Both the position numbers and the translations under genes were made by a program. The notes under the pieces were generated by a model, which did not search any database, was not told where the DNA came from, and saw only the letters and a list, made by a program, of their open reading frames with translations. From Paraphysomonas bandaiensis (Eukaryota; Protista; Chrysophyceae), in assembly GCA_965644295.1 (NCBI GenBank), contig CBFFRP010000136.1, forward strand, positions 186,001 to 250,000: DNA of 64,000 bases. The letters are read 5' to 3'. Below are positions 3,827 to 51,554 of the stretch, one piece after another (within the stretch, counting starts at the first letter, position 1; every line of letters begins with the position of its first letter).

Positions 3827-3834
3827 GAACAGCT

Positions 3835-30770: not shown

Positions 30771-33700
30771 ATGGCAAATTGCAGTGGTATCGTACAGTGG
30801 CTGCGATCAGATAAGATCACTATAAGGGCTAAGGGAAAGAAGAAACTCCTAGAATTCATATCTCTTGATCGAATATTTGTCTGTGGTAATGACAGACAGT
30901 GGTGGGATATCATCCGTGCTGTGATTGAGTGGGAATGCAAAGAGCTCACAGCAAGTCGAGGAAAAAGAAGAGACTGTGACTCTGAGAACGCTGTGTTTGT
31001 GAGGCAGACTATGCGGCATGGTTTGGATTTGTGTCACTTATCACCCAAAAAGTGTGCAGATATAATAAATCACGTGTTGTCGATGTTGTGCAATAAAGAC
31101 TTAAGTCAAACATATCACAACGAGCATTTGTCAATCTTGCACGAATGTTTAGAAAACATGAAGTTTGTCTCTGCCATTGAGCTGCAGGAGACACTTAATG
31201 TGTTAAATTTTATGAAAGGATATGTGACTGAAAGAAATGTGAGCTCACGCGAAATTGTTCGGATAATGCAGGGCCTTGCACAGACCACCCTCAAGGAAGG
31301 CCATTCTTCAGGAATTATACCGGCATTATTGGAGTGGTTCCAACAACTTCTCCAGGAGACTCCGGTATCCTCACCATCGTTTGACAAACTTCTTCCGGCA
31401 TTATGTGATGCGCATACGACAGTACTAGATCTGCATGGTATTGACTGCGTTTCAGAAATATTCCGATATGTGGATGGACTACTCGTTGCTATTTCCAGAG
31501 TGTTGCCGCAGCTGTCGGTATCGGGAAGAGATCCTCTTCTTCGTCTACTCCTCAGCTACATCCGCACATGCTGTACAGGGTCTTGTGGATTGCGGCTATG
31601 CACTGCGGATCCGCTCAAGAAATCGTTGAACCAATTACTTGAGGTTGTTTCACACACCGACTTCCTCAAAGGCCTGATGGTGCACATGCGCAGCCAGTAC
31701 ATGTCCAGACACAGCACAAGTACAGCAACACAATCCTTGACTCCACCTACAAACGATACTTTTGTCAACTACTTGGAAGATACACGCTTTAACCTTCATT
31801 TGGAAGTGATTGCATCACTGACTTCTGCGGCAGCGTCTCAGAGCGATTCTTGCACCAATTGTTGTCCCATTCATTGCGAATTATTTCGCGCTATCGAGAG
31901 CTCTCCTTCTCAATTTAGTCACTCTGGAACTCACGGAAATAACTATTCACAGAGTTATCTATCTATGCCTAGTAGTACTTCAAGACCAGTGGGAGGGACA
32001 AGCGCTAATCAAGCTGTGGTTGAAAGCCGTCTCTATCTTCTACATGCCCTCTGCACAACACCTTTTCGACGGTACACACTGTGTCCTCCTTGTGCCCACC
32101 CTAAGAACGACTCCAACGACATTTTTTTGGCGTGTGAATTAGTGAGATGGGTTCACCTCTTGCGAAATCAATTGTTCAATCACATTCGAAATAGGTCGCC
32201 CTCCCAGTTGTGTGGAGCTATACTCACAGCCCTTGAGGGGATTGCAATTGCGTCTTACTCCCTTAGTGTTGAACACTCCAAGCTCAGAAGTGCGTGGTCT
32301 GACTTTGTTGAAACTCTAATTATTAGTGAAGTGACATGCAGCTTGTTGCGTGGTCCTGTGTCGCGATCGTCTCTCCCTGAAAGTCTCTTGAAATTACTTA
32401 CGTTCTTGTTGGAGTCTAAACTCTTGCATGAACCCGCTATTTATGCTCTTATGCAACATCTCTGGGCAAACAGTGCATGTCTGAGAGATCTCAGACTTGT
32501 GGAGAGCTGTTGCTTCTTCCAGCTTTTGTCGCATTTGCTGCTCACATCATCGTCCATTGAAGCTGTACGAAGTATTGCCTCGGCCTCATTCGAGAACTCA
32601 ACTGATGAGTGTGGCACTTCAAGTACTAACAATGAATGGTTAGCACATTTACATGAAGGTAAGCCTGTGCGAGGAGTGCTCTGTGCCACCCTGTGGCTAG
32701 ATAGTCTGCTGGAGGCACCTTCTAATCAACGCGTTTCTGCTCTCGCCCAGGTACCGGGGTATATTTATGGGCTAAAGGCGCTTGCTGCGACATCACTAGG
32801 TCTCAACCGCGTTTGTACTGATGGGGGTAGAGAGAACTGGGAGTGTATTTTTGCTCGCGAAATGGATGGTATACTCTTAGGACGGGTAAACTGGTGTGAA
32901 CGGTCTGTTCTGGACCGTGTCACAGCGTATGCATCATTACAAGAAAAGGAAGTAGAGAGTGCGATGGACTGCGCCGGTTCTGTCTTCACTCCTAACGCTG
33001 TTTTTGAATCCGCAACCACGGCACTGGATATGTTGTGCGTCTTGTATAGACGTGTGGAGGCTAAGGCTGTTGGTGAGCTCTCACTGGATGAAACCGTTGA
33101 GCACGTGACATCCTGGCAATTGGTGAGCTTATTTCTGGCCGCTGTATATATTGCTATCGCTGAAGCAGTTGGAAGCATGGGTTTGCGTAATGAGCGCATG
33201 GAACACATCGTTCGAGATTCACTAAAGCAATTCTGGCTCGTAATGCGTATGATTTTTAATGCTTTATCCTCCCGCCCTTGCCTTCTTCGTGGCAACACAG
33301 GCTCCACAGGAACAGTTGAATATGTGTCTTGCTGTAGTGCACTTGTTGCAAGGGCGGCTTGTGTAGGTGGGACAACCCGTTCTATAAATGGATCCGATAA
33401 TTCTCGTAAGTATATGGTTGAGTGTTGCGATGAGATGTTGTCATACATACCACTTGTGGTCAACGAAGCAGTAGGGGATGATTACACGACAGCAGGGTCT
33501 GCGACCTCTATGGGCATGCGGCGTGGAGTCTCTGGAAGTACTCTGCGTAGCAGCTCACGCGACATTTCAGATACTGGTGATGATTTTGATGTCTTTATGG
33601 AATGCATTGGGCCCAAACAGCAGTTTCAGGACATGCCCTCATGTGAGGGAATTGTATCAGACATTAGCCAAACAGATCTCAGGCTATTGTTTAGTGACCA

Positions 33701-36700
33701 CCAGATTCACATAGTTTGTTCTACTGCAGCAGCTGTTGTATGTAGTAATCCGACGCAAGAAACGCTGGAAATGCTTTTGAACGTGTTGACTACAGTGTCT
33801 GATGGTGGACGAAAGTATCGCTTGCCATCTGAAGTGGCACTGTATATAGGAGAAAGAATAGGAATGGTATCGAGTGCACAGGGCGTTTTTGACTTCGTTA
33901 AGTATAATACTTGGGAGGAGGACTGGGGATTCTTGGGTTACTACAAGGCACTCTGTGTGATTCGTGAGCTCTCGTTTAGGGAAGAATACTTTCGGCAAGA
34001 TGATTGCAGTGTAGTTATTGAAATGATATTTCCTAGCAATACCTTACTTCAGGAATATCTGGTTATGTTTTGGAGAGCTAGGGTCTTGCAGCTAGAGTGT
34101 GCTGCGAGAGCTTTCTGTCTGTACCCTGAAAAATACAAGCAACAGATGGGCGATGTTGTCCTGCAGAGTTTGTTGGATATTGATACCCGAGTACGCTCAA
34201 CTGGGCAATATATGCTATCGTTGTTGTTTCGGTTTCTCAAGAACCATTCTATCATATACTCGACCGTGAGAGATCATATCGATGTAGATAGGACCATATT
34301 CGACTGCATCACGCTCCAGACTTATTCTCCTGAAGGGTTATATACTGGAGAGGCTCATATTCTTGACGACTGTGTCGTGTCTCGTGTGCTGGCTTGTACA
34401 CGCTGTGGTATGGCAAGCAGGCGAGTGCTCCATTTGGCTCTGCGTGACGTCCTCTATCTCTGTGGCCTGCACCCTCAGTGCCGGCAAGACAATGCCATAC
34501 ATATTTCACCCTTGTCTTCTGTTAATGACACCTTGAGGCTGTGTGTAAAACATATGGCACGCTGCAATGGATATTCTTCTGAGGGCTTATTGCTTCGTGA
34601 CCACTTGGAATGGATAGTTCAAGAGTGGCTAAAAGTACACAAGCACGAGTCTGAAGAGTTATGCTATAAAATACAGTACTTTCCCTTCTATATATTTGGT
34701 TATGATTCATTGTCTGTATGTTTGTCGGAACTGAGTAGTGTTATTGTCCCGCTGATATGTTCGTTGGAGCCATGGATACACAGGTGGAATACTTTGTCGG
34801 CTTATGCTGAGCAATGCGGGTTTGGTCAAGAGGACTCATCGCTTGCCTTGATTCTGCGCCAGAACATTGTGAGTATCAAAAGTAGAGAGATATTGTTATC
34901 AAGTGGCTTCTATAATTCTCCTCTTGGTATTGAAATTACGTGTCACAGTGAAAGTGATTGTAAATCTCAGGCACGGTACCTTAAGTTGTTCATTGATCGA
35001 ATGTCGAACCTTGAGGAACTACAACGATTTGCACGGAAAAACTTGACTGACGTTGTTTACCAGTTGCTTATGCTGGTTGCTTTCGATCCTGACTTATCTC
35101 GTGTTGACGATGTATTGTCTGGATCTATTTTTGGTGACATGAATCACATAGTATGGTACGAAGAGTATGAGAAGCAGCTGACATGCTTACTTAATTTCAC
35201 TGCAAGAGAATTTCAGCTGACCAATTTTGTGTCCCTGGTGTGTGATGTGAATGCTCTTTACTTACTTGCTCAACTTCGCACTCATATACGAGAGACCCGC
35301 AATGATTTCACGGCCTTTTTTCTTTCGTGCTCTGTGTGTTACATTTCTGGCTGTGTAGTATCTGATAGCTTTTTAGTAACTCAAGACGCCAACGGCGGGG
35401 CGGGTTTGATATATCGTTCCGTCATAGCCTGCTTATTTACATGTATTGAGTGTTTTCCACAAAGTATATTCATCGTGATAAATTGCGTGTCGAATGTTGT
35501 TAGTTCCGTAACTGCATTTTTAAAGAGTAAGCGCATTCCGTCGTGTTCCTTTCAAGCAATTGTTCCGGACATGTTTGCAGAAATTTTATGTCTGCTTTAT
35601 GTAATTACAATGAAGGAAAACAACCTTTCTCTAAATCCCACTTGTGCAGTTAGGGATGGGCATTTGAGTATGAGGTATGCCGCACTGATGGAGTCCGATG
35701 TATTTTGTCCCGACAAGTGTTCTGAAATTTTACATAGACTTCGTGCCACCATTTTAGAAATGCTGGAATGGGGGAAATTGGACAAGGCCTGCTCTGTGTC
35801 CATGTGTCTTCCTCTTCCTTGTAGCGTGCTATCTGTTGTTAGTGCCGATGGTTTCCTGTGCGACTCCTTTAAACATCAGGATACCAACTCACCAAACGTG
35901 GTCCATCGCATTGAGTATTTTGATGATGTGGTGTCGGCAATGCTGGGAGGGCAGTTAGTTGCAAAAGGCTTGATATGGCTGCAACTTCATGAAATCAAGG
36001 AAATGTTGCAACCGCAAACATGCTCTGACCAGGTAGCTGGCGAGGCTCTCTGGCGGAAAGATGTTGATATTGTTGCATCCTTTGTTGCGTCTTTGTTATC
36101 TTTGGGCAATTCTGAAGGGATAGTGGAGGTCTCCAAGAATTTACAAACCGATATTGCGTATGTTCTCGGAAGTTTAGGATTTGTTGATTTACATTCCATA
36201 GGTCACGGTAAATTGATGTCGCGACCAATTGCGGAATATGACCCACAGGCATTAAAAATGAGGTTGTTGTCTAAACTCATGCTCAGTATATGGGAGGGGG
36301 GCACTGATGTTGCGAGAGCATCGTTAGGAGCGATTCGCAACGTTCAATTTACTGGATGCATGGCGTCGTATGTGTCCGATGTGCAGAATGCTCGAGATAG
36401 TTTTTTGTCTGTGACTTCGATTCTGAGCAAGAGTCTTGTTCCCTTTCATTACGAATATCAAAGGCACTCGGCCGACCAGTCATCCGAAGCATGGAGCAGC
36501 CGAACTTGGAGTACAGCAGGGAAGGATTATGATATGTGGTTAAAAAATCTCGTTGCGACATTGTTGTCGAAATGTTATTGTGGCCTTCAAGAGAATTCAG
36601 TTGGTCCACCCGTCTCAGCAGTAAATACAGGAGGCCAAAGCAAGTCCAGTCTCAGTGGAAGTGACGTTTTCCTGTCATGTTTTTTACAAGTCTCTAAAAC

Positions 36701-39700
36701 TTCGACTGTTGTTGCAGAGTGCCTCTTCCCTCTTATATTATTTGACCTCCTTAGTCACGATGATTCGTCAGGTAGAGTGGCAGAAAAAGTAGGATATTTG
36801 ATGAGAACACACCTATTCAGCAAGGATTGCACATTGCCTGCAGCAACACGTATTGGGTGTGACTGTATGGTGTTCATCCTGCGTCAGAATATTTCGAAGC
36901 ATATCGAAAATTCTTTACAACGGAATAGGAAACGCCCTCTGGAATCACAGAAGTCCAGCAGGAGAGAAGACACGTGGTCGCTTCCATATTCAACTGGCCT
37001 CAACATTGACTACAAAATTGTGGCAGAAGCTGCTCTCCGATGTGGGTATGTGTGTACTGCAGAGCTGTTTGTTGAACTTGCAGCTGAGGCTATACGCGGT
37101 GATGTTGTCCAGCACAGTATTTCCTCTCGCAGAAGCCTTATTAATGGTGACGAGGATAACAGCATCGCTCACCTTGCCGACTTGCAGCTTCGTATATATA
37201 AGGATGTACACAACCCGGACGCTATCTTCGGGGTGACTCAGAGTTCAGATTTGTCCACACAGGCCCTTGTGTATTCTCACACGGGCCAGTGGACGGAGGC
37301 GCTGGCTGCATATGACTGTATTGCTCAGTGTGGGGGCATTTTCTCCCGCGCTAAAACTGATTTCGAGGCAGCGCAGTATGGGACGGCACAATCTCTTCAT
37401 GCTTTAGGCTATCGTTCTGTTTTGCAAAGGTATATCTCGGCACCTACTTTCGGTAGCGAGCCGGAATCTTCTCAAAGTCTCTTGGATAGTACAACGAGTG
37501 CACTCTCTGAACAAGGTGTCAAATCCGCTCTGCATCTCAGTCAGTGGTCTTGTGGGACAATGCACCAAATCTTTGACTCTACGTGTGCACAGAAACCACC
37601 TATGTCTCTTCGTTCCAATGTTAATAATTATGATTTCATCAGCAGTAGTATTACCGCTGCTCTTCGAGATATTTGTTCTGGGGACAGAGTTAGTTCACAA
37701 AGTCGAATTGACGCCTGTATTCGCATGTTTTTTCCTCGAGTTACTGACCTATTTCAAGAAGAAACGTCAAAGAGTATGATGATTCAGCTGGCCGATTTAC
37801 AGCAGCTCGTAGAAGTTGGGGAGGCGATAAGCCTCGTAAATCCCAGGAATGAAACTGATCTCCATACAACTCTATCTCATGCTCCTATAAACGCTGAAAG
37901 TTTAAATAAAATAATTAATTCGTGGAGAGGGAGGTTGTCATGCACATTCAGTGACTCTGTGTTTTGTGAAACGATTTTGTCGTTGCGGTTATCGATACTG
38001 TTTTCGTTGCTTGGTTCTCGCTGCATTGAGTTCTCTCATTTTTTGCTCTTATTAGATCAAGTCCACGATGCTATCGACTCAAAGAATGCTGCCCATGCAC
38101 TTAGCCCTATTCTCTACAAAATTCGCGGCTTACTTGAGACATCGTCTGGTGCCCGTACATCGACTGCTAATGTCACCAATGTATGCCCGTTTCCAACAAT
38201 TTCTGTAACCAGTGCTACTAAAGCACGCTATGCGATGCAGGAAGCTCGCCTGTTATGGAGTAAGGGTTTACACGACGTCGCGCTGAACACCATGGTAGGT
38301 GATGCCATTGCCCCACTCAAAAGGGTGTTGTTAAAATCAAGCCGCACGAGAAGAGATTGGGGTGAATCAGAAGATTCCGCTATTTCAGATTCTCTATCCG
38401 AGGCGTATCGCATCAGTGGTAATTGGTTGTCGTCGAAGAAAGGGGCAAGTGGATCGCAAATTGTGACTTCTTTTTTTATGCCAGCTGTGAAAGCGGCAAG
38501 ATCAGTGTCTCAGAAAGTTGGAGCTCATTTGTCGTTGGCTCGTTTTAACCTTCATTTACATCACACTGTTAAAAATCGAGTAGGGAGTGCGGAATGGATT
38601 CAGGGAAAGAAGGTATCAGAAGACAGAAAATATGAGTATGAGCAGTGCTTGGCACTATACAAAGCAAAATATCCTCGGGAATCAGCCGTGAGAAAATCTG
38701 ACAAGGCTGAAGAGTTGGCACTCAAAAGGCACATGGTGGTGCTCAAGAAGGAGTTAAGTATAGATGCTAAAGAGCGCGAAGCAGTGGAGAATTCAGTTCA
38801 AGACCACCTTATTAATGCACTCAAAAACTATAAGGAGGTTTTGGCCTTGTCAAAAGAGTCCGATATGGATACAATTTTTCACGTTATTAATATTTGGTTT
38901 CAGTATTCAGAATCGAAGGAAGTAAACGACGTGTTTAGGGATATTGTGTCCGAGACCGCAAGCTTCAAGTTTGTTTCTCTAACGTATCAAATAATGTCTC
39001 GATTGGATGGATCTGGAGATGCTGGTAAAAGTAGTCTGCAACGAACATATCCTGTATCAACTGATGGAAAAGCAGCAGTGCGGGATGTACCATCACCTTG
39101 TGCTTCCGATTTTCAGTCAGTACTACGTAATCTTTTATTTGCTCTGTGTCGGGACCATCCATACCATACTCTTCCTCAACTTTTTGCACTTGTCAATGAG
39201 AAATTGAAGTTAGATAATATTTCAGATGGTTATAATGTTCTATCGTCAACATCTACTTCTGGACATGAAGGCTCTACTAGGATTCAGGCAGCTAGAGGTA
39301 TACTGCATAGGCTAAATTCTGAGTTCTTGTCAACGGGACGATATGCTAATTTGGTTGAGTCTATGGACCTGGTTTTCCGCACTTATATCGAACTCTCTCT
39401 CACAAGTGTTGAGCAGTGCATAAACGACAAAAAAACTAAGGACGTTAGATTTACTGCTTTACATCAGTATCGTGGTAAAGTCCCTTTCCACCAGCGCATT
39501 GGAAGTGTGCGATCATCTCGTGCAACTTATGACGCGCCGTCGACCTGCATTCCTGTGTTGACGAGAAGCCAAGCAATCCATGCAGATTGCGACTATAGTG
39601 ATGCTGTCTTTATCACAGGATTTGCTGATACCTTCTCTCTGACGGATTCTGGTCTCTCTCGACCAAAGATAATTAAATGTGAAGGAAGCGATGGGAGAAT

Positions 39701-40736
39701 ATATACTCAACTCGTTAAAGGAGGCGATGATACGAGGCAGGATGCAGTTATGGAACAAGTCTTTGACCACGTAAATGTCATGTTGAGGACGAATAAAGAG
39801 TGTAGGAAGCGGAATTTGTCCGTGAGGACGTACAAAATAATTCCCATGACCCAGCAAAGCGGAATCATCGAATGGGTTGAGAATACTGTTCCATTTGGGA
39901 CGTACTTATGTGATAAGCCGAAGGAGAGGTTATTGGGTGCTCATTCCAGATACTTTCCTCAGGATATTTCACATCTTAAAGCGAGAGAGAAGTTTGCTGA
40001 TGCAAAAGACAACAAAGAAGCCGTTTTCAATGATATTTGTGCACAATTTCACCCGGCTTTTCGTTTTTTCTTTCTGGAGAATTTTCCCGATCCGTCTGTG
40101 TGGCTAAGTAGTCGCGTTGCTTACACACGTACAACTGCAGCAACTTCAATGGTAGGATACGTGTTAGGGATTGGGGACAGACATTCCCATAACATTTTGA
40201 TCGACTATAAGAGTGCTGAGGTTATACACATTGACTTCGGAATAATGTTTGAACAAGGGAAAGCATTGGGTACCCCAGAGACAGTACCATTCCGGCTTAC
40301 ACGTGACATTGTGGATGGTATGGGTATATGTGGATGCGAGGGAACATTTCGGCGGTGTTGCGAAGAGGTTCTTAAAGTATTGCGTGCTAACTCATCTCAG
40401 TTATTAACTATCTTGGAGGTAGTTATTCACGACCCTCTCTATAAATGGTCCCTGTCTCCGATACAGGCTCGGAAGAGGCAGCGCGCTGAAGGAGACAGCG
40501 TTCGTCCACTTTTTGCCATTGCAAATGATACTGGTGTGGACACTTCAGTTCACAATAGTTCAAGTATGGATGCAGCACAGAGGGCATTGCTGCGCATTAA
40601 GGATAAGCTCCAAGGATACGAGGATCCCAGTGGCGAAAGCTTGAGTGTAGAAGGACAAGTGGAGCTCCTAATTAATGAAGCTATAGATCCAAAAAATCTA
40701 TGTATGCTTTTTCAAGGCTGGGCGCCGTGGCTGTAA
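30771..40736 (+). CDS. ATM: Serine/threonine kinase ATM/Tel1 (PIKK), single exon, 3321 aa
   Basis: N-terminal TAN-like LRSDKITIR; DHPYHTL; kinase QLVKGGDDTRQDAVMEQVF, GYVLGIGDRHSHNIL, HIDFG, PETVPFRLTRDIVDGMG, HDPLYKW; FATC LSVEGQVELLINEAIDPKNLCMLFQGWAPWL. Confidence 0.96.
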   Translation: MANCSGIVQWLRSDKITIRAKGKKKLLEFISLDRIFVCGNDRQWWDIIRAVIEWECKELTASRGKRRDCDSENAVFVRQTMRHGLDLCHLSPKKCADIINHVLSMLCNKDLSQTYHNEHLSILHECLENMKFVSAIELQETLNVLNFMKGYVTERNVSSREIVRIMQGLAQTTLKEGHSSGIIPALLEWFQQLLQETPVSSPSFDKLLPALCDAHTTVLDLHGIDCVSEIFRYVDGLLVAISRVLPQLSVSGRDPLLRLLLSYIRTCCTGSCGLRLCTADPLKKSLNQLLEVVSHTDFLKGLMVHMRSQYMSRHSTSTATQSLTPPTNDTFVNYLEDTRFNLHLEVIASLTSAAASQSDSCTNCCPIHCELFRAIESSPSQFSHSGTHGNNYSQSYLSMPSSTSRPVGGTSANQAVVESRLYLLHALCTTPFRRYTLCPPCAHPKNDSNDIFLACELVRWVHLLRNQLFNHIRNRSPSQLCGAILTALEGIAIASYSLSVEHSKLRSAWSDFVETLIISEVTCSLLRGPVSRSSLPESLLKLLTFLLESKLLHEPAIYALMQHLWANSACLRDLRLVESCCFFQLLSHLLLTSSSIEAVRSIASASFENSTDECGTSSTNNEWLAHLHEGKPVRGVLCATLWLDSLLEAPSNQRVSALAQVPGYIYGLKALAATSLGLNRVCTDGGRENWECIFAREMDGILLGRVNWCERSVLDRVTAYASLQEKEVESAMDCAGSVFTPNAVFESATTALDMLCVLYRRVEAKAVGELSLDETVEHVTSWQLVSLFLAAVYIAIAEAVGSMGLRNERMEHIVRDSLKQFWLVMRMIFNALSSRPCLLRGNTGSTGTVEYVSCCSALVARAACVGGTTRSINGSDNSRKYMVECCDEMLSYIPLVVNEAVGDDYTTAGSATSMGMRRGVSGSTLRSSSRDISDTGDDFDVFMECIGPKQQFQDMPSCEGIVSDISQTDLRLLFSDHQIHIVCSTAAAVVCSNPTQETLEMLLNVLTTVSDGGRKYRLPSEVALYIGERIGMVSSAQGVFDFVKYNTWEEDWGFLGYYKALCVIRELSFREEYFRQDDCSVVIEMIFPSNTLLQEYLVMFWRARVLQLECAARAFCLYPEKYKQQMGDVVLQSLLDIDTRVRSTGQYMLSLLFRFLKNHSIIYSTVRDHIDVDRTIFDCITLQTYSPEGLYTGEAHILDDCVVSRVLACTRCGMASRRVLHLALRDVLYLCGLHPQCRQDNAIHISPLSSVNDTLRLCVKHMARCNGYSSEGLLLRDHLEWIVQEWLKVHKHESEELCYKIQYFPFYIFGYDSLSVCLSELSSVIVPLICSLEPWIHRWNTLSAYAEQCGFGQEDSSLALILRQNIVSIKSREILLSSGFYNSPLGIEITCHSESDCKSQARYLKLFIDRMSNLEELQRFARKNLTDVVYQLLMLVAFDPDLSRVDDVLSGSIFGDMNHIVWYEEYEKQLTCLLNFTAREFQLTNFVSLVCDVNALYLLAQLRTHIRETRNDFTAFFLSCSVCYISGCVVSDSFLVTQDANGGAGLIYRSVIACLFTCIECFPQSIFIVINCVSNVVSSVTAFLKSKRIPSCSFQAIVPDMFAEILCLLYVITMKENNLSLNPTCAVRDGHLSMRYAALMESDVFCPDKCSEILHRLRATILEMLEWGKLDKACSVSMCLPLPCSVLSVVSADGFLCDSFKHQDTNSPNVVHRIEYFDDVVSAMLGGQLVAKGLIWLQLHEIKEMLQPQTCSDQVAGEALWRKDVDIVASFVASLLSLGNSEGIVEVSKNLQTDIAYVLGSLGFVDLHSIGHGKLMSRPIAEYDPQALKMRLLSKLMLSIWEGGTDVARASLGAIRNVQFTGCMASYVSDVQNARDSFLSVTSILSKSLVPFHYEYQRHSADQSSEAWSSRTWSTAGKDYDMWLKNLVATLLSKCYCGLQENSVGPPVSAVNTGGQSKSSLSGSDVFLSCFLQVSKTSTVVAECLFPLILFDLLSHDDSSGRVAEKVGYLMRTHLFSKDCTLPAATRIGCDCMVFILRQNISKHIENSLQRNRKRPLESQKSSRREDTWSLPYSTGLNIDYKIVAEAALRCGYVCTAELFVELAAEAIRGDVVQHSISSRRSLINGDEDNSIAHLADLQLRIYKDVHNPDAIFGVTQSSDLSTQALVYSHTGQWTEALAAYDCIAQCGGIFSRAKTDFEAAQYGTAQSLHALGYRSVLQRYISAPTFGSEPESSQSLLDSTTSALSEQGVKSALHLSQWSCGTMHQIFDSTCAQKPPMSLRSNVNNYDFISSSITAALRDICSGDRVSSQSRIDACIRMFFPRVTDLFQEETSKSMMIQLADLQQLVEVGEAISLVNPRNETDLHTTLSHAPINAESLNKIINSWRGRLSCTFSDSVFCETILSLRLSILFSLLGSRCIEFSHFLLLLDQVHDAIDSKNAAHALSPILYKIRGLLETSSGARTSTANVTNVCPFPTISVTSATKARYAMQEARLLWSKGLHDVALNTMVGDAIAPLKRVLLKSSRTRRDWGESEDSAISDSLSEAYRISGNWLSSKKGASGSQIVTSFFMPAVKAARSVSQKVGAHLSLARFNLHLHHTVKNRVGSAEWIQGKKVSEDRKYEYEQCLALYKAKYPRESAVRKSDKAEELALKRHMVVLKKELSIDAKEREAVENSVQDHLINALKNYKEVLALSKESDMDTIFHVINIWFQYSESKEVNDVFRDIVSETASFKFVSLTYQIMSRLDGSGDAGKSSLQRTYPVSTDGKAAVRDVPSPCASDFQSVLRNLLFALCRDHPYHTLPQLFALVNEKLKLDNISDGYNVLSSTSTSGHEGSTRIQAARGILHRLNSEFLSTGRYANLVESMDLVFRTYIELSLTSVEQCINDKKTKDVRFTALHQYRGKVPFHQRIGSVRSSRATYDAPSTCIPVLTRSQAIHADCDYSDAVFITGFADTFSLTDSGLSRPKIIKCEGSDGRIYTQLVKGGDDTRQDAVMEQVFDHVNVMLRTNKECRKRNLSVRTYKIIPMTQQSGIIEWVENTVPFGTYLCDKPKERLLGAHSRYFPQDISHLKAREKFADAKDNKEAVFNDICAQFHPAFRFFFLENFPDPSVWLSSRVAYTRTTAATSMVGYVLGIGDRHSHNILIDYKSAEVIHIDFGIMFEQGKALGTPETVPFRLTRDIVDGMGICGCEGTFRRCCEEVLKVLRANSSQLLTILEVVIHDPLYKWSLSPIQARKRQRAEGDSVRPLFAIANDTGVDTSVHNSSSMDAAQRALLRIKDKLQGYEDPSGESLSVEGQVELLINEAIDPKNLCMLFQGWAPWL

Positions 40737-40945
40737 TTATGTGATTTATGATTTCGTTGCTTCAGCTAGATTATTTACTTTGCTGCTATTACGGGCCATT
40801 ATTTACTTGATAACTAGATATTTAGCAATAGACATGTACATTTGGATTCCTAATTGTGAGTATTGAACAGGCTCTTATCGCATTGCAAGATCAAATAGCA
40901 TAGTACTAAGATCAGCATATTAGTTTCATCAATAAAGTACCGCTA

Positions 40946-41260
40946 TGTTGGAATACGTACAGTTCTCTAAGATAGTACTGTAGAATACGTTAAATACAAT
41001 GTGAAAACAGTAATACGTAGTCAATAGTCAAAGGTGCTATATAGCTATAACTGTGAAACTGAGCGAAGTATTATATCATGACGATTCGAGATACGGAAGT
41101 TGAGCAGTGGTTTACATGAACGAAATAATTTACATACATGTGTTACATGACAACACACACGATTGTGTATACAATTATAATAACGTAATCTATCTAGTTT
41201 GACTAACTTAAACTTCTCTTAAAACTATCTTAATCATCAGAAAATGGTCAATACTCAATA
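40946..41260 (+). repeat. 5' LTR of Copia-2 (TG...TA)
   Basis: tgttggaatacg...actcaata, a direct repeat of 47708-48035. Confidence 0.95.
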
Positions 41261-44020
41261 TGGTAGCGAATGCGGAGGAGAGAGCTGATGTTCCATGGTT
41301 CGACGAGAGCAACGTTGAGCAATGGATCGAAGATTTCTAGACGTTCCTTATGAGAAAGGAGCAGAGTGAGGTGGCTCTAGAAAGGCCACCAGAGGAAGAG
41401 GACTTCGGAATTCAACCCCTGAACAGTCTTGAGACCAAGTCCTACAAGGAAGCGGTGGACAAGTATTGGAAGGCAAATGAAATTGCCTACTCATACTGCA
41501 GAGAGGCGGTGAAGCGATCTCCGAAGGCGCTGCAGAAGTTTCATCTGAAGCACAAGGATTTCAAGGCAGCTGAAGGAACTATAAACAAGTTCAGCGCCAG
41601 AGAGATGGTTAGCACTTTGAAATTGTGTTTTGAAGGAGGAAAACAAAACAAGATTAGTGTTTTGCTCGCTCAGTGTGGATCATTCAAGATGAAGCCAGGG
41701 GAGACCGCGAAAGAATATGTACTGCGTTTTGAGCTGCTTCTCCGTGAACTTCAGGCGCATAACCAAACGGTAACTGAAGGAGGGAATTATCAGTGATGAA
41801 TATGACGGTTTGAATTATGCCCTGTATTTAATGCCCGATGATGTACCATATGAATTGTTATCCAAACGTATCGAACAGTTCGACGACACCAAGTATGGGA
41901 GGAAAATCATAGAGAAAAAGCGCAAGAGCACGGAGGAGCTGAATCATATTAAGAAGCCTCGAAAGAAAGAGAGAGTATCTACAAAGAGGAAGTGCTCTTA
42001 TTGCTCGAAGAAAGGTATAATACACAATCATAATACAGAACAATGTAGGAAGAAAAAGGGGGAAACGAAGGGACAAAGACCGGGCAGTAAGGAATATACA
42101 GGATGCAGAGTATGCAAATCCAAAAACCATCGTGCGAACGAATGTCACCGAAATTCCACAAGATAGACCAAGAAACCCCAGAAATCTGGGAAAGTCTTCA
42201 CGTTCGAGAATATCCGCAGAGGAGGAACCGAGTCTGACTCTGAGTCCGAAGCGAATATGATTTATGACTGCGCTGTTGATATATATGAAAAAAGTGATAC
42301 ATGTTGTATGATTGACACTGACCACTATACATACATATATACATGCTGCTCGTCGTCTATGTTTTTGGTAAATGATCAGCAAGTACTCGATGAATCTATT
42401 CCATCAGATAGAGTTATCAGAGGCTCCAAGAAAGGAACTGAGATCAATGTAACAGCAACAGGAAGGGTATCGAATACTCCGAAGACATCAACAGATTTCT
42501 GTGTTCGGGAAACGTTTGAACGATATATGGGTTATGAGTTCATCGTTTGGAATGGAATTCGAATTGTGGATCACAACACTGGAGCGACAGTATTGGAGGG
42601 ACCCGTGCTTAATGGTATGACTGCGGTCCCTCCTACGCAAAACTTACTGAGTCTGCCAGGTGTATCCAGTTGTAGCAGGGGTGCACCAGTAGCAAATTTG
42701 ACTGATCAGTATGGAGAAGATGAGTTGGAGCTGCTGCAGAGGAGAGTGGGCCATTTCAACAAAGGGGCTCTAACTGAGGCACATAGAAGGATGTTGTTTA
42801 CTGGCTCAAATCTGCAAAGGAAGCACCTATCGAAGACTGCATTGAAAAAATCTTGTCTCTGTAGCATACAGTATTATGTGCCAGATCCAAAAGTACGAGG
42901 GTTTCGTTTCATACAAAGGATGATACGGATGTCAAGCCGAACATATCGGCTGATGTGCAAGTATTTCTTAATACTCCTGCACGTGGAGGAGAGCGCTATG
43001 TGGTCAAACTCACTCATCGCCCGAGTAGGATGTTCTGGGTGAAAGGCATATATAAACAAGCGTACTAAAAAGAAGAAGTGATTCAGGATTTTAGAGAGGT
43101 GTTCGAAGGAGAGATTAGGCAGTACAAGCTGAGAATAGATCATTACCATGCTGATGGAGCAGGAGAGCTGGTGGTGAATCTGGAACTTAGGAGTTATTTG
43201 AGGTCACATGGCTGCTACAAACACACTTGGTCCCACATGGCTGCTACAAACACACTTGGTCTTCAACAGATAGTCCAGAGATGAATGCAGTGGGGAAGCA
43301 AAAATTCAGGACTGTATCAGAGATGACGTTGGCGATGTTGTTGCAGTCAGGCCTACCGGTTCCATTCTGGTTAGACGCATATTATGCTGCTCGTGATCAG
43401 ACTTCCTACATGGACGGATATAGAGGATACATGTCACCATACGAGTATGTCATGGGTCAGCCACCCAGTTTAAAATATTTTAGAGTATAGGGGTGTAAAA
43501 CTTATATATTGACACCTAAGGCTGACAGGCGAAAGGACTGGGACGACAAATTAAAGATTGGACACCTAGTGGGATATTCGGAGAACAAAGTGGGATACCA
43601 GCAGGTATATCTGCCAGCCACAGATATAAGGTAGTCACATGTGTGCATATACTTACGGACGAGAAAATACCTTCTCGTCCAGAGGAATATTACACAGAAA
43701 TTGATGCACTATGGGTACAGACAGAACCCAAACCGAAATCCGTTGACAATTATCAGCACCTGGATGGTTAAGACGTTTCACATCGACGATATGACGATGG
43801 ATTGTTATACAAAACCAACAGGGTGGTGGAAAGAAAGGGAGTCATAGTGGCATATCGATCACTTGTAACTGCGGGGAGGACCCACATTGAACAAAAGGTA
43901 CCTATACATATAGAAGATGTACAGGTTTGGAACACTCCTGGATATACGGGAACGAGGGACGCCTCCAGTACGACTACCGGACGGAGTACGTCTACTATCC
44001 CAGCATCTGAGAGTCATCAG
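41260..44020 (+). pseudogene. Copia-2 gag-protease-integrase pseudogene
   Basis: FKMKPGE, CRVCKSKNHRANEC, LQRRVGHFN, YHADGAGEL, WSSTDSPEMN, LLQSGLPVPFW; multiple stops and frameshifts. Confidence 0.9.
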
Positions 44021-44107
44021 GTGCTCCCTGAATAATACCATGGTTAACTAGCTGCTCCTGCTGATGACTCTCAGGTGCTGGATAGTAGACGTACTCCGTC
44101 CGGTAGT
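43973..44107. repeat. Small nested inverted repeat (~48-bp arms, 40-bp spacer); mirrored at 45327-45461
   Basis: actaccggacggagtacgtctactatcccagcatctgagagtcatcag ... ctgatgactctcaggtgctggatagtagacgtactccgtccggtagt. Confidence 0.93.
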
Positions 44108-44773
44108 GAAGCAAACTTTTTTCAAACTTGGGAAAAATTCTAAATTTGGGCCTTTTTAAAAAATTCATCATGAAAACCTCATGTTTATTGTTGATATAAT
44201 TTAGACAGAGGTAATGAAGAATATTAATGTTGTGTAATGATGACGATTCCAAGAAACCTTTTTACATTATCAAGACTAAGTCATATATGGTATAATAATA
44301 TCATAATAATATTACTATAAAATACAACATGTATGTATTATTATTATATATGAATACTCTTCTCTAGTAACTATAACTTTCAATTCTTTTCCTGTTACGC
44401 TTTCCTTTGAGTACAGGCGCAGCTCCAACCGCTCCTGTGTCTACCCAATCGGTATTTGGAACAACTTCGATATCCCAACTACCTGATGTATTCGTTTTCT
44501 TCTTTCCGGAGGGTTTTATCGCAGGTTTCAACTCTTTCTGCCTTATACCTCTGATAATTTCACCATCAATGAATTCTATATCATACTTTCCATCTTTATA
44601 CCCAATAACACTACCATTGAAATTATACATATTTCTAATTTTTTCACCAACGGCATATAGTGTTGCAAATCATCACTACAACTATCACTGGAAGTTTTAT
44701 CGATAACAACGCTATCCCTTGAGCTGCTGTAATTATCTGATTCCAGTGATAGTTGTAGTGATGATTTGCAACA

Positions 44774-45070
44774 CTACATGCCGTTGGTGAAAAAATTAGA
44801 AATATGTATAATTTCAATGGTAGTGTTATTGGGTATAAAGATGGAAAGTATGATATAGAATTCATTGATGGTGAAATTATCAGAGGTATAAGGCAGAAAG
44901 AGTTGAAACCTGCGATAAAACCCTCCGGAAAGAAGAAAACGAATACATCAGGTAGTTGGGATATCGAAGTTGTTCCAAATACCGATTGGGTAGACACAGG
45001 AGCGGTTGGAGCTGCGCCTGTACTCAAAGGAAAGCGTAACAGGAAAAGAATTGAAAGTTATAGTTACTAG
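44774..45070 (+). pseudogene. Captured non-Copia gene fragment with a Tudor/SH3-like domain (mirror copy 44364-44660 on the minus strand)
   Basis: (Y/H)AVGEKIRNMYNFNGSVIGYKDGKYDIEFIDGEIIRGIRQKELKP fits a Tudor-like VG..V...G.I.....Y.I.F.DG pattern. The segment is AT-rich and has no counterpart in Copia-1. Confidence 0.55.
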
Positions 45071-46289
45071 AGAAGAGTATTCATATATAATAATAATACA
45101 TACATGTTGTATTTTATAGTAATATTATTATGATATTATTATACCATATATGACTTAGTCTTGATAATGTAAAAAGGTTTCTTGGAATCGTCATCATTAC
45201 ACAACATTAATATTCTTCATTACCTCTGTCTAAATTATATCAACAATAAACATGAGGTTTTCATGATGAATTTTTTAAAAAGGCCCAAATTTAGAATTTT
45301 TCCCAAGTTTGAAAAAAGTTTGCTTCACTACCGGACGGAGTACGTCTACTATCCAGCACCTGAGAGTCATCAGCAGGAGCAGCTAGTTAACCATGGTATT
45401 ATTCAGGGAGCACCTGATGACTCTCAGATGCTGGGATAGTAGACGTACTCCGTCCGGTAGTCGTACTGGAGGCGTCCCTCGTTCCCGTATATCCAGGAGT
45501 GTTCCAAACCTGTACATCTTCTATATGTATAGGTACCTTTTGTTCAATGTGGGTCCTCCCCGCAGTTACAAGTGATCGATATGCCACTATGACTCCCTTT
45601 CTTTCCACCACCCTGTTGGTTTTGTATAACAATCCATCGTCATATCGTCGATGTGAAACGTCTTAACCATCCAGGTGCTGATAATTGTCAACGGATTTCG
45701 GTTTGGGTTCTGTCTGTACCCATAGTGCATCAATTTCTGTGTAATATTCCTCTGGACGAGAAGGTATTTTCTCGTCTGTAAGTATATGCACACATGTGAC
45801 TACCTTATATCTGTGGCTGGCAGATATACCTGCTGGTATCCCACTAGGTGTCCAATCTTTAATTTGTCGTCCCAGTCCTTTCGCCTGTCAGCCTTAGGTG
45901 TCAATATATAAGTTTTACACCCCTATACTCTAAAATATTTTAAACTGGGTGGCTGACCCATGACATACTCGTATGGTGACATGTATCCTCTATATCCGTC
46001 CATGTAGGAAGTCTGATCACGAGCAGCATAATATGCGTCTAACCAGAATGGAACCGGTAGGCCTGACTGCAACAACATCGCCAACGTCATCTCTGATACA
46101 GTCCTGAATTTTTGCTTCCCCACTGCATTCATCTCTGGACTATCTGTTGAAGACCAAGTGTGTTTGTAGCAGCCATGTGACCTCAAATAACTCCTAAGTT
46201 CCAGATTCACCACCAGCTCTCCTGCTCCATCAGCATGGTAATGATCTATTCTCAGCTTGTACTGCCTAATCTCTCCTTCGAACACCTCT

Positions 46290-47539
46290 TGATGTTAGCT
46301 CGGCATTCTGTTACGTGAATTTAGACGAAAAAGTGTACATATATATCCACCGCCTGATGAGGAACTCGGGGACGGATGGTGTTTCCAGTTGATAAATGCA
46401 TTATACGGATTGCGGTCTTCACCACGTCAATGGAATCGCAACATAGACAAATTCATCAAATCAATGAAATTCAACGCATGTGTTCTTGATACGTGTCTCT
46501 ATTATCGTCGGCACAATGCAAAACTCACATTATTGATATTGTATGTAGACGATATCATAATAGCATCTGTGGACCTTGAGTTTTTAATATTTGTCAAGGA
46601 CAACTCCTGTCATACGTTCGAAATGCGTGACATGGGAGAGTGCGAGAGTTTTCTGAATATTAGGATTACGAGAGGTGAGGATTAGTTCAAATTAGATCAG
46701 TATAAATACGCAGAGAATGTGGTACAGAAATTGGCTATTAGCCCAAAGAACAAAGAAGCACCTCTAACGTCCAATGCACAGGAAATGCTAGCTACAGAAA
46801 GAGAACTCACAGCAGAACAAGAAAATGGGTATCAACATTTCCATATCGTAATATAATAGGAGCCATTTTATATCTAGCGCTTTATACAAGACCAGATCTT
46901 GCCTATGCCGTCGGATTGCTGTCGAGATACAGCAGTAATCCTACATACGCATCGTGTCGTTTAGCTATTCATTTATTGAAATATTTGAAGGGCACCACCA
47001 GCAAAGGAATCAAATTCAGTGGGAGTAAGTTTGACTTACATGTATTTAGTGATGCGGACTCTGGGCAGTCGATATACTAACGAGACGTTCAACTACCGGC
47101 TATATTGTATTCTTATGTGCTGGAGCAATCGCATAGCAGTCCGAACTGCAGACTACAGTTGCAACTTCTAGTATCGAGTCCGAGTATATGGCTGAATATG
47201 CGGCCATGCAAGAACTGGTGTGGCTACGGGGGGTGTTACGAGAGCTAGGACTCGCATTGACGAAGCCAACTCCATTTTTTATGGACAGAAAATCCAGTCT
47301 ACCACAAAAGATCAAAACATATTCAGATAAAGTACCACTAGGTTCAGGAACACATAAATGGAAGGTTTCCTACAGCCAGATAGATTCATGTATCGACTAA
47401 GGATATGACGGCCGACATATTTACAAAAGCGTTATCTAAAAAGCTCTTTAAACTCCATGAAGAATCTATCACAGGGGAAAAGAGGAGCATTTCAAATGAA
47501 GTTGAGAAGAATCAGAAGAAGCGGTTCAAGAAAGGTTAA
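46290..47539 (+). pseudogene. Copia-2 RT (from LDVSSAF onward) and RNase H pseudogene
   Basis: LDVSSAFCY, ALYGLRSSPRQW, LYVDDII, TRPDLAYAVGLLSRY, SDAD, ADIFTKAL; stops and frameshifts present. Confidence 0.9.
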
Positions 47540-47707
47540 GGGTATGTTTTTAGTGGGTAAGAATCCCACATAACTGTGTTACAGCGATGTGTGATGTACA
47601 CAGTATCTTTATGAAGATTTTCACATCCATTTTATTCTATAAGATGACTAGATGATATATATAGCTGCAGTATAATGACGATTACTCGTTTCTATATTGA
47701 GGAGGAG

Positions 47708-48035
47708 TGTTGGAATACGTACGGTTCTCTAAGATAGTACTGTAGAATACGTTTAATACAATGTGAAAAACAGTAATGCGTAGTCAATAGTCAAAGGTGC
47801 TATATAGCTATAACTGTGAAACTGAGCGAAGTATTATATCATGACGATTCAAGATACGGAAGTTGAGCAGTGGTTGACATTACCGAAATAATTTATCATG
47901 TTGTTGACATACATGTGTTACATGACAACACACACAATTGTGTATACAATTATAATAAAGTAATCTATCTAGTTTGACTAACTTAAACTTCTCTTAAAAC
48001 GATCTTAATCATCAGAAAATGGTCAATACTCAATA
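47708..48035 (+). repeat. 3' LTR of Copia-2
   Basis: Direct repeat of 40946-41260, followed by the TSD CGCTA (48036-48040). Confidence 0.95.
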
Positions 48036-48400
48036 CGCTACAGGGTCTATGGTGTATTCACTCAATTTAGTGGCCTAGATACCTTGTCAGCACCGAGAAA
48101 TGAAGACAGTTTTGCATGTATGGTTGCAGAATTAATAACGTAGTAACGCAATGGAAGTAGTGGTACGATAATCTATAATCTACAGATAATATATAATGAT
48201 ATCACACCGGTCGCCAATATACCAGAAATTTCTTATTCCATGTTTGGGGTTTGGACGTTTGGACCCTCAACAAAGTCGGACTCGAACCTTTTCATGATGT
48301 TCTGGGGGATACGTACCGGAGATATTTGGGAAACTAATGTGAGCCGCAAATATAGTCAGCAGATGCTTGTGTAGTACAACGGACACCAATAAATGTCACA

Positions 48401-48540
48401 TGCTCACTGCGTTTGCTGTGAGTGATAGAGCAAAAAGTAGTTACACCTTGGTGCTTCTGGTGACGCACAATCAGCTCTCGTAGCGTTAAATAGTAGGATA
48501 TCAGAGGTAAGCACTGATTATTAAATGTCTATTGCTAAAG
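48401..48540. repeat. Dispersed repeat, copy 2 (related to 10249-10355)
   Basis: Colinear shared blocks with copy 1. Confidence 0.65.
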
Positions 48541-48924
48541 AGACATTCATTACTCCCATGTTTGGATACACTTTGGGATTAGTCCGGTCTTACATGTGAC
48601 ATTAAAATGCCGTATGTTCGACGCTGTATGACTAGGCTTATGAAGATTTTCTTGGGAGTACATATGTGTGCAAACACAAGAGAGAGTTCAACTACTACGT
48701 CTAACACGAAATCAATCTCACGATGGCAAAGTTGTTACACTGCGCAGACTACCAGGGAGTGATAATTACTCAAACAAACGCAAGCCACGAATAAACTCAA
48801 ATGAATGTAACAGCAGACAAATGATTATCACTGTAGACGGGTGCACATATTACATGTATACTCAGCCTTCAGCAATTTAGACCAGAGTTTCCACTTCACT
48901 ATCAACTCAAGAATATGAATATCT

Positions 48925-49055
48925 GTCTGTGGGAACAAGTCGATCCAGCAAAAAAAACCAGGCTTTTTTAATGCATGTTGTTTTTAGACGAATATATTTC
49001 AGAGAAATGACGAAAAATGTCGATTTTTTTGCTGGATCGACTTATTCCCACAGAC
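48925..49055. mobile_element. MITE-like element, ~131 bp with ~32-bp TIRs
   Basis: gtctgtgggaacaagtcgatccagcaaaaaaa ... tttttttgctggatcgacttattcccacagac (1 mismatch). Confidence 0.8.
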
Positions 49056-49201
49056 GCTATACCGCTTATATGCAGCTAGGCTTTACGTGCTATATTTCAG
49101 TAATTTTGGATATACACCCAAAAAAATACTCAAATTTTTATGATTTTATGTGCAGTATTGTGAGGTGTCGTATTTCGGAAAAGTGGTTGAAAAAAAATTT
49201 C

Positions 49202-49283
49202 CGACTGCTGCAGGATTCGAACCTGCGCGGGAATTTCCCAATGCATTTCGAGTGCATCTCCTTAACCACTCGGACAAACAGTC
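49202..49283 (-). tRNA. tRNA-Ser(CGA)
   Basis: Acceptor GACTGTT/AGCAGTC with discriminator G; D-loop CCGAGTGGTTAAGG; anticodon arm ATGCA-CT CGA AA-TGCAT; long variable arm; T-arm GCAGGTTCGAATCCTGC. Confidence 0.96.
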
Positions 49284-49614
49284 ACTTATATTATGTCCTC
49301 TAAAAATAACTAAATATATACTTACAAACTTGAATGTATGGAAGATGAAGAGAGACTGGATGGGGATTGTGGTCATCAATGCTCTCAGTGTTCTGAAAAT
49401 GCATCCACAGTATTCCATATATACCTGTACACACATACAGATGCCCTCTGCACCGCATGGAGTATATATGTATCTGTGCGTGTGGTAGATGTCTATGTAG
49501 ACGTGTATGTATGTATGTGTGGGTAGAACTGGAGTGGATTTTATTCTCTGGTCAGATAATTAGAAGCACACACATACACATATATACACACACTGTCATC
49601 TGAATACTGTCATA

Positions 49615-51554
49615 ATGTCTACAAAAGAAGAAATCACTCTTGCCATTGAAAGCAAAGGGAATGAGATCAAAGATCTTAAGGCTCGCAAGCCCCCTACACT
49701 TAAAGAGGACCTCCAGCCTCTAGTAGCCGAGCTCCTCGCTCTTAAGGCATCCTATAAGGACATCACTGGATTAGACTTTGATCCACCTAAGAAGAAGAAG
49801 GTGAGCACTCCAGTGGAAGCACCGGTTAAAGAGGGACCCAGCAAGAAGGATCTCAATAAGGAGAAGAGGAAAGCGGAGAAGGCTGCTAAGCGTGCGGAAG
49901 CTAAAGCAATGGCTGCATCCACACCAGATGCGAATAATTCACAGGGCGCTCCTGTGGTCGATGAGTCTTTGGCTCATCTCTTTGGAGACCTTCCATTGAT
50001 TCGATCCACAGTCATTACCGACAAGGTTTACAAAGATATCGATGAAATTTCTGAGGATCACGCCGGATTCAACATCTGGGTTCGAGCAAGGGTCCATGCA
50101 AATAGAGCTGTGGGAAAGGGGTGCTTTTTATTGCTTCGTCAGCGCGTGGACTCCATTCAGGCGGTTATGTTCCAGGGCGCGTCTGTCCCCAAGGCGATGG
50201 TGAAGTACGCGACCTCTATCCCAATGGAGAGCGTGGTAGATGTGCTCGCTGAGGTTACTGTCCCTGACGTTCCTATTCAAAGTGCTACTGTTAAGAATTT
50301 GGAGCTAAATGTATTGGAGATTCACGCAGTCTCAAGATCTCAGGAGCTTCCTTTCAATCTTGAGGATGCATCAAGGAACGAGGAACAGGCAGCTGCCACA
50401 GGAATGCCGATTGTTCACCAGGACACCTCACTCAACTACCGGTGGATTGATACTCGTACTCCCGCTAACCAGGCCATATTTAGAATTCAGTCCGGCGTCT
50501 GTCAGCTATTCAGGGAGTTTCTCACTGCACAGAAGTTCACCGAGATTCACACACCAAAGCTTATCGCGGGTGCCTCCGAGGGCGGCGCCAACTGTTTCAC
50601 ACTGCAGTACTTCGACCAGTCTGCGTGCCTAGCACAATCTCCACAACTATACAAGCAGATGGTATCCGCATGCGGCGGATTTGACAGAGTGTTTGAGATC
50701 GGTCCCGTCTTTCGCGCGGAAAATTCTAACACCCACAGGTCAGTCTGCCGTTAAGCATTTCAATCATGTGCTCATCCAGCTCTTCTTAGACATCTCTGTG
50801 AGTTCACTGGTATGGACTTCGAAATGGCTATTTACGAGCACTACTACGAGTGCCTAGATGTGAGTTTATGGGTTGCTTGTATTGTATGGTTTCGTTAACT
50901 GTATGTTGTAGTTAATGGGGGAACTCTTCCACTACATGTTCGATGGTATCAGGGACAGGTTCCACCACGAACTACAGATTATCTCTCAACAGTACCCATT
51001 CGAACCATTGCAGTACCAGCGCCCACCGCTTCGTTTGACCTACGCTGAGGGCATTGCTCTGCTGCAGGTGACTGTTGCATTGTTCTCGATGTATTGATTT
51101 AAACTGTGCATAGGCTGCTGGGTCGACTGATGCCTCCGTTGACGATGATCTTAGCACACCTAACGAGAAATGGCTTGGAAAGATTGTTAAGGAGAAGTAT
51201 GGTGTTGACTTCTTTATGATGGACAAGTATCCTCTTGCAGTAAGACCATTTTACACAATGCCCGACCCAGAGAACCCTAAGCTCTCTAATTCTTACGACG
51301 TATTTATTCGCGGCGAAGAAATTGTTTCTGGAGCGCAGCGTATCCATGACCCCGATCTTCTTGTTGAAAGAGCAACTAGCCTCGGTGTCAAAGTTTCCTC
51401 CATTCAGAGTTACGTCGACGCCTTCAAGCATGGAGCGGTGCCACATGCTGGTGGAGGAATTGGAATGGAACGCGTTGTCATGCTCTACCTCGGCTTGAAG
51501 AACATCAGAAAAGTTTCTATGTTCCCCCGTGATCCGTCGAGACTGACGCCGTAA
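49615..51554 (+). CDS. DARS1: Cytoplasmic aspartyl-tRNA synthetase with an N-terminal WHEP-like domain; 3 introns
   Basis: [96 protein letters not shown]. Confidence 0.96.

Follow-up and report, generated by a model that had tools for sequence, protein, structure and literature searches.

The 64,000-nucleotide stretch of Paraphysomonas bandaiensis DNA analysed here (the window: positions 186001–250000 of contig CBFFRP010000136.1, abbreviated C136) contains a near-perfect palindrome at window positions 43095–46289, within an old long terminal repeat (LTR) retrotransposon of the Ty1/copia type. The palindrome is probably a genuine rearrangement that took place after the retrotransposon had integrated, built by repeated fold-back (snap-back) repair at short inverted microhomologies, and it is most likely a by-product without function. 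Its arms combine part of the Copia integrase region with one end of an unrelated DNA transposon, here called F. Genome comparisons were made against the assembly to which C136 belongs, comprising 62.6 Mb in 669 contigs.

Architecture of the palindrome

A repeat search over window positions 40000–50000 yields three collinear inverted blocks with 100% complementarity, which a gapped alignment merges into a single palindrome. The component parts are listed below; Copia positions and polyprotein residues refer throughout to the intact family copy L021, which encodes a gag-pol protein of 1578 aa.

43095–44693, forward strand: left arm, 1599 bp (repeat search, gapped alignment and family maps), made up of Copia sequence (43095–44024), a nested inverted segment (to 44107), a single base (44108) and the left end of F (44109–44693)
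44694–44740, no strand: spacer of 47 nt, native F sequence (alignment with four F copies)
44741–46289, reverse strand: right arm, 1549 bp, the reverse complement of the left arm, made up of F in reverse complement (44741–45325), forward Copia 3539–3631 (about 45327–45420) and Copia 2684–3591 in reverse complement (45410–46289)
44109–44740, forward strand: left end of the F transposon
43205–43233, forward strand: tandem duplication of 29 bp confined to the left arm, absent from the right arm and from the family
43568–43588, forward strand: 21 bp shared by the left arm and the family, deleted in the right arm between 9-bp direct repeats
43973–44107, no strand: inner small fold-back, with its mirror image in the right arm at about 45327–45461
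44735–44740: last 6 nt of the spacer (TCTGAT), former arm sequence left without a partner by a 27-bp deletion on the left side
46288–46291, no strand: outer junction, where the right-arm end (position 2684 in reverse complement) is joined to Copia position 4212 with a shared CT

The Copia part of each arm corresponds to polyprotein residues ~643–945, covering the C-terminal half of the integrase core, the SH3-like domain and the linker. This anatomy agrees with an earlier reading of the window (the original prediction), the factual statements of which all hold; it had described about 1 kb of integrase and about 590 bp of other DNA inverted around a 47-nt spacer. The latter DNA had been called foreign, and some 585 bp are indeed not Copia; they can now be assigned to the end of a terminal inverted repeat (TIR) transposon that continues through the spacer, while the nested inverted segment of 94 bp had been missed.

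The two arms differ, as had been counted before, by two single-nucleotide polymorphisms (SNPs; 43657/45777 and 44657/44777) and by two indels, in which the left arm is longer by 29 bp and by 21 bp. A third private change is a 27-bp deletion on the left side, located precisely at the border between the left arm and the spacer. With polarity taken from independent family copies, the gain of 29 bp, an A>G substitution at 43657 and the loss of 27 bp are derived in the left arm, and the loss of 21 bp and an A>G substitution at the position paired with 44657 are derived in the right arm. The arms show 2 differences over 1549 bp, whereas the LTR pair of the surrounding element shows 10 mismatches over 315 aligned positions, in addition to 2 indels (Fisher p=8e-7 for 2/1549 versus 10/315). 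Divergence is 25-fold lower between the arms than between the LTRs, which supports the view, already taken in the original prediction, that the palindrome is younger than the Copia insertion or has been homogenised.

The genome search reveals no other copy of the fold-back junction, the Copia part of the arms is likewise unique to this locus, and no target-site duplication (TSD) is present at the outer ends of the arms. A mobile element of the Foldback (FB) type was considered and rejected on these two grounds.

Transposon F as the source of the non-Copia DNA

The F sequence in the left arm begins exactly at the terminus AAGCAAACTTTTTTCAAACTTGGG, and homology to F extends through the spacer to 44737. 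Every F match in the genome starts at this one base. The genome holds 28 F termini, which fall into a left-end and a right-end variant, and both termini in the window are of the left-end variant. Complete F copies have TIRs of 34–36 bp and sizes of 1.55–6.6 kb, and a TSD of 3 bp is found in three of five complete copies (AAT, CAA and TAT). Judged by these termini and duplications, F is a cut-and-paste TIR DNA transposon.

In the genome search, the 585 bp and the spacer are matched by one copy on C235 with 92–96% identity. Seven F copies are ~79–80% identical over the searched stretch, and those examined further show ~83%; the F lineage that is young, with copies 99% alike, is 79–83% identical to the F part of the arms. 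Five short F left-end fragments of 160–220 bp are 96–97% identical to this part (C136:263281–263441, C12:12439–12659, C210:79405–79565, C589:18546–18709 and C95:15973–16136). The first of these lies on the same contig as the palindrome, ~32 kb downstream of it. At least the fragments on C95, C210 and C589 form the left termini of F copies that are complete and belong to the sub-lineage that gave rise to the F piece in the arms.

The 3-kb F copies contain open reading frames (ORFs) of 312 aa and 226 aa, for which no Pfam match and no Atlas lead was obtained, and the 6.6-kb copy has no long ORF. The two frames may encode an unrecognised transposase or accessory protein. They are adjacent and on the same strand in the 2984-bp F copy on C183 (L046:1365–2999), and the palindrome arms hold the 3′ part of the 226-aa frame.

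The F copy on C235 (L026:3318–5329) carries a palindrome of its own at L026:4105–4781, with arms of 310 bp that are 99% complementary and a spacer of 57 nt. Other F copies (L016 and L019) carry the corresponding segment once. The palindrome on C235 is a second, independent fold-back within the F family.

Turning points and junctions

At the outer turn, the alignment of the window with four F copies crosses the spacer as far as ...GTAATTATC at 44734, after which the window reads as the reverse complement of the upstream F sequence. The spacer is native, contiguous F sequence, with which independent F copies align as far as 44737. The trinucleotide ATC at 44732–44734 is shared at the fold-back junction, forming a 3-nt microhomology (ATC/GAT). 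Six nucleotides of native F sequence (TCAGAT) have been kept by the right arm and are gone from the left arm after the 27-bp deletion. These extra 6 nt on the right, together with the loss of 27 bp on the left, reveal the original ATC junction and a later deletion; by this reconstruction, the loop before the deletion would have measured ~62 nt.

The inner turn coincides with a natural imperfect inverted repeat in intact family copies, CCATCAGGAGC ... GCACCTGATGA, which matches at 9/11 positions, encloses a 29-nt loop and is located at 3581–3631. In the window, forward Copia sequence runs into the first half-site and is followed by the loop and ~53 nt of upstream sequence in reverse complement; the resulting nested segment of 94 bp (44014–44107) is the reverse complement of L021 ~3539–3631. 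The two 48-nt halves of this inner fold-back differ at 2 positions. The inverted 48 nt carry the private variants of the window copy, and their template was therefore this copy rather than the active Copia lineage.

The outer junction at 46289|46290 shares a CT that lies inside an imperfect ACACC..CT patch. Microhomology is present at both turns (ATC/GAT and the 11-nt repeat) as well as at the resolving junction (CT).

Proposed order of events

The structure can be accounted for most economically by two nested fold-backs with a transposon insertion in between. In the first step, a broken or stalled 3′ end in the linker between integrase and reverse transcriptase of the inserted Copia element would have switched strands at the natural 11-nt inverted repeat. 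The integrase would have been copied backwards to position 2684 and rejoined at 4212 via CT, with deletion of 3632–4211 (~580 bp). In the second step, F would have inserted, with a 3-bp TSD, into the inverted Copia copy at 42 bp from the hairpin. The F terminus abuts inverted Copia, and forward Copia runs uninterrupted in the same arm; F must therefore have entered an inverted copy that already existed. In the third step, following a break inside F, the 3′ end ...ATC would have annealed to a GAT located ~62 nt upstream in the same strand, and DNA synthesis would have started there in the backward direction. It would have copied F, the small hairpin and the integrase, until homology with the older inverted integrase allowed the break to be rejoined; the rest of F would have been lost. 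Afterwards, the arms would have gained 2 SNPs and 3 slippage-type indels. Sequence loss at the centre of a palindrome, as in the 27-bp deletion, is a familiar later outcome. Fold-back priming at short inverted repeats near breaks is known to give inverted duplications with short spacers, and the turn at ATC/GAT carries its signature (PMC10622511, PMC3907307, PMC11724301).

Relation to active copies and potential as a hairpin-RNA locus

The original prediction had proposed the palindrome as a candidate natural hairpin-RNA silencer of Copia-2 resembling the maize Mu killer locus, which was reportedly described by Slotkin et al. in 2005. In the form considered here, transcription would cross the spacer, Dicer would cut the product, and the resulting small interfering RNAs (siRNAs) would silence Copia-2 and/or F in trans. 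Such a function is unlikely, although its structural premise is sound. Any transcript through the locus would fold into ~1.55 kb of double-stranded RNA (dsRNA) with a near-perfect stem, a Dicer substrate; the predicted fold of the inner 641 nt has an energy of −550 kcal/mol versus −146 kcal/mol for shuffled sequences (z = −51), so that this part of the proposal holds. Such a transcript could start in the element's own diverged but promoter-bearing LTR, or arrive by read-through from the ATM-like gene, which looks expressed and ends 209 bp ahead of the LTR in the same orientation. The genome also encodes a possible machinery for RNA interference (RNAi), with two Piwi/Argonaute loci, a Dicer-like gene on C377 (a 1695-aa frame in which two RNase III domains are recognised) and two loci for RNA-dependent RNA polymerase (RdRP); at least seven silicon-transporter loci are likewise present. 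Gene silencing by inverted-repeat transgenes is known from the diatom P. tricornutum, in which small RNAs of 25–30 nt map mostly to LTR retrotransposons, where they cover methylated copies (PMC2724275, PMC4247016).

The sequence relation between the arms and their presumed targets argues otherwise. The Copia family has at least 30 copies in the genome, five of which were fetched at full length (L021 on C314, L022 on C378, L023 on C92, L024 on C433 and L025 on C645). The LTR pairs are 100% identical in four of these and differ at a single position in the fifth. Four of the five copies are 98.8–99.7% identical to each other, the remaining one being ~95.5–96% identical, and the 1578-aa gag-pol frame is intact in L021, the sole copy whose ORFs were listed. 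These features suggest that the main lineage of Copia-2 is active now or was so until very recently. With an intact ORF, LTR pairs showing 0–1 differences and copies that are so alike, there is no sign of a family-wide shutdown. The active LTR pairs contain 1 difference in ~1600 bp and the arms 2 in 1549 bp, which indicates that Copia transposition went on around or after the formation of the palindrome.

The LTRs of the active lineage terminate with TA in place of CA, and its long ORF begins inside the 5′ LTR. The rve integrase core gave no Pfam match at E<=0.01 in the L021:759–5492 polyprotein (region of residues ~580–750), and the catalytic core therefore appears unusually divergent from the Pfam model. 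A solo-LTR-like copy that is 93.6% identical to the LTRs (L024:128–452, C433) lies directly upstream of a full-length active Copia-2 element, an arrangement that suggests either more than one insertion at the site or recombination of an older element.

The Copia part of the arms is 77–84% identical to every other copy in the genome, and ~80% identical to most. Perfect matches to an active copy are limited to 84/993 21-mers, 63/990 24-mers and 48/987 27-mers (6–8% for 21-mers and 3–5% for 27-mers), and are confined to seven short blocks. The claim that the dsRNA would be directed against the integrase of the Copia-2 family is not borne out by these figures. As the arms are only ~80% identical to active Copia, a key sequence prerequisite of the silencer is lacking, which weakens the proposal. 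Mu killer, in contrast, stems from the very element that it silences (PMC3440606). For the F part the relation is closer to a single copy, with 61% of the 21-mers shared with the copy on C235 and the left-end fragments mentioned above nearly identical, whereas the young F lineage shares only 21%. Small RNAs, if made, would find most of their matches in the locus itself and in a single F sub-lineage, and would match active Copia only patchily. A transcribed and diced locus that feeds small RNAs against the Copia integrase and the F ORF, with RdRP-dependent spreading to offset the patchy identity, can be conceived, but is likewise improbable. A trace of small-RNA-directed methylation was sought in base composition: the CpG observed/expected ratio is 0.61 in the Copia part of the arms versus 0.78 in an active copy, but GpC is lower too, and no specific CpG or transition signal is seen. 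The locus is probably not an effective family silencer, and the sequence evidence argues that strong silencing of the Copia lineage now active cannot come from it.

Alternative origins

Formation of the palindrome before integration, by strand switching or self-priming during reverse transcription with a co-packaged foreign template, followed by gene conversion that kept the arms identical, is distinctly unlikely. The intact LTRs, primer-binding site (PBS), polypurine tract (PPT) and TSD would fit the integration of an already rearranged cDNA, the microhomology at the junctions resembles template switches of reverse transcriptase, and the ~4% divergence of the inner fold-back halves is similar to that of the LTRs. 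However, the F piece starts at a transposase-defined terminus, as expected for an insertion and not for a switch to an RNA template, and acquisition of the non-Copia DNA by template switching was rejected for this reason. In addition, the 25-fold lower divergence of the arms would require sustained gene conversion, and a 3.2-kb hairpin in the genomic RNA would presumably impede reverse transcription.

An artefact of the assembly or the library, in which a fold-back chimeric read or an amplification chimera has entered the consensus, is very unlikely. Chimeras of long reads and of amplification are typically inverted and show microhomology. Yet the palindrome has an internal position, one Copia copy continues correctly on either side of it with its 5-bp TSD intact, and at least two chimeric junctions would be needed. 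Both arms contain private derived mutations, including slippage-type indels of 21, 27 and 29 bp, and such separately mutated arms are hard to obtain from a chimeric read. The nested architecture, moreover, implies successive events.

Transposition into Copia, as one unit, of a palindromic left-end/left-end derivative of F (44109–45325) is extremely unlikely: the outer ends of this 1217-bp block are both valid F left termini in inverted orientation, but the fold-back junction has no further copy in the genome and no 3-bp direct TSD can be defined, and the idea was rejected as the inverted symmetry runs ~1 kb past both F termini into Copia.

Several points weigh against fold-back repair after integration as the origin of a functionless palindrome. 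The order of inner fold-back, F insertion and outer fold-back is a deduction. The near-identity of the arms could stem from arm-to-arm gene conversion instead of youth. The 2/48 differences between the inner halves exceed the rate in the outer arms (P=0.002) and are not fully explained; an older inner event or mutagenic repair synthesis is possible. No allelic contig is found, the flanks of the locus being single-copy in the assembly, and the two diagnostic junctions were not sighted in scans of metagenome contigs, a blank that is uninformative. A function of the locus is conceivable as well: RNAi genes are present, the production of small RNAs is plausible if the locus is transcribed, and 40% of the arm 21-mers lie within 2 mismatches of an active copy.

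The host Copia element and its surroundings

The element that contains the palindrome has the two LTRs, the 5-bp TSD, the PBS and the PPT of a Ty1/copia retrotransposon, all of which could be located as originally described. Its features and those of the neighbouring gene are as follows.

30771–40736, forward strand: ATM-like PIKK gene, a single ORF of 3321 aa (ORF list; Pfam FAT, PI3_PI4_kinase and FATC on the C-terminal 1321 aa)
40941–40945 and 48036–48040: TSD CGCTA, left and right (read directly from the sequence)
40946–41260, forward strand: 5′ LTR, TG...TA (direct repeats, sequence and LTR alignment)
From 41261, adjoining the 5′ LTR: PBS, starting with TGGTAGCG
41261–43094, forward strand: degenerate gag, protease and N-terminal integrase, equivalent to L021 ~821–2683, with ~84% identity (BLAST) and fragmented ORFs
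46290–47707, forward strand: degenerate C-terminal reverse transcriptase and RNase H, with many stops and frameshifts (match to L021 and reading frames)
End of 46290–47707, directly before the 3′ LTR: PPT, GAGGAGGAG
47708–48035, forward strand: 3′ LTR (direct repeats and LTR alignment)

In L021, the Pfam domains occur in the order Retrotran_gag_2, gag_pre-integrs, SH3_retrovirus (753–823) and RVT_2 (1073–1302). Apart from the rearrangement, the window copy is collinear with L021 in the BLAST map, window 40946–44024 corresponding to L021 501–3591 and the window from 46288 onward to L021 4212–5979. Polyprotein residues ~958–1151 are missing, and with them the first ~80 residues of RVT_2; the reverse transcriptase picks up again at LDVSSAF (window 46288), which bears out the claim that its N-terminal part had been replaced. 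The window copy shows ~84% identity to intact family copies in its 5′ part and 86–91% in its 3′ part, and its frames are broken; by this divergence it is an old, dead relative of the active lineage.

The stop codon of the ATM-like ORF (40736) lies 209 bp from the start of the 5′ LTR on the same strand, in line with the ~210 bp given originally. A Copia copy on C352 (L042:4118–5343) is 92% identical overall to window 40942–42128, and 98.5% identical over window 41786–42128. Such a mosaic over the LTR and gag at the 5′ end of the window copy suggests that Copia lineages have exchanged sequence by recombination or gene conversion. The Copia element is followed, ~0.9 kb downstream, by a hairpin at window 48925–49055 resembling a miniature inverted-repeat transposable element, with 43-nt arms that are 86% complementary and a 45-nt spacer; more than 40 further copies with 85–94% identity are present in the genome.

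Comparison with known systems

The locus resembles maize Mu killer in being a natural partial inverted duplication of a transposon beside a host gene on the same strand, from which a long hairpin RNA is possible. Mu killer derives from the active MuDR element that it silences, and its dominant, heritable silencing has been shown genetically, although the model of a hairpin produced by read-through has been questioned even there (PMC3440606). The window locus shares the inverted transposon duplication with Mu killer but does not have arms near-identical to active elements, their identity to the active lineage being ~80%; furthermore, the host is a retrotransposon, and part of an unrelated DNA transposon is included. 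Were the palindrome nevertheless a dual-target hairpin-RNA locus, it would be the first natural locus of the Mu killer type outside plants and animals.

With the hairpin RNA (hpRNA) loci of Drosophila and the inverted-repeat siRNA loci of plants, the palindrome has in common a long inverted repeat with a short loop, which is a potential Dicer substrate (PMC10317233). Those loci are defined by their small-RNA output and their targets, the present locus by its sequence; it offers a place to test whether accidental transposon hairpins become small RNAs.

The palindromes of primate Y chromosomes are large, and their arms are held identical by arm-to-arm gene conversion. As in these palindromes, the similarity of the arms in the window far exceeds what the age of their surroundings would predict. 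The scale is however different, kilobases here versus tens to hundreds of kilobases, and a recent origin explains the arm identity in the window more simply.

A close likeness exists to the fold-back inverted duplications of yeast and human, in which arms likewise surround a short native spacer and microhomology is found at the turn and at the outer junction. Unlike these, the window locus has arms of 1.6 kb, is interstitial and has been resolved locally without a dicentric chromosome; it also comprises two nested rounds and a transposon end, with a pathway that is read from sequence only. Together with the palindrome in the F copy on C235, it suggests that structural change through fold-back repair recurs in this genome. 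The palindrome in the window is a cleanly readable natural example of palindrome building, in which the junctions, the seed repeats, the deletion at the centre and the slippage mutations private to each arm are all visible, and in which a transposon end has been caught inside the structure.

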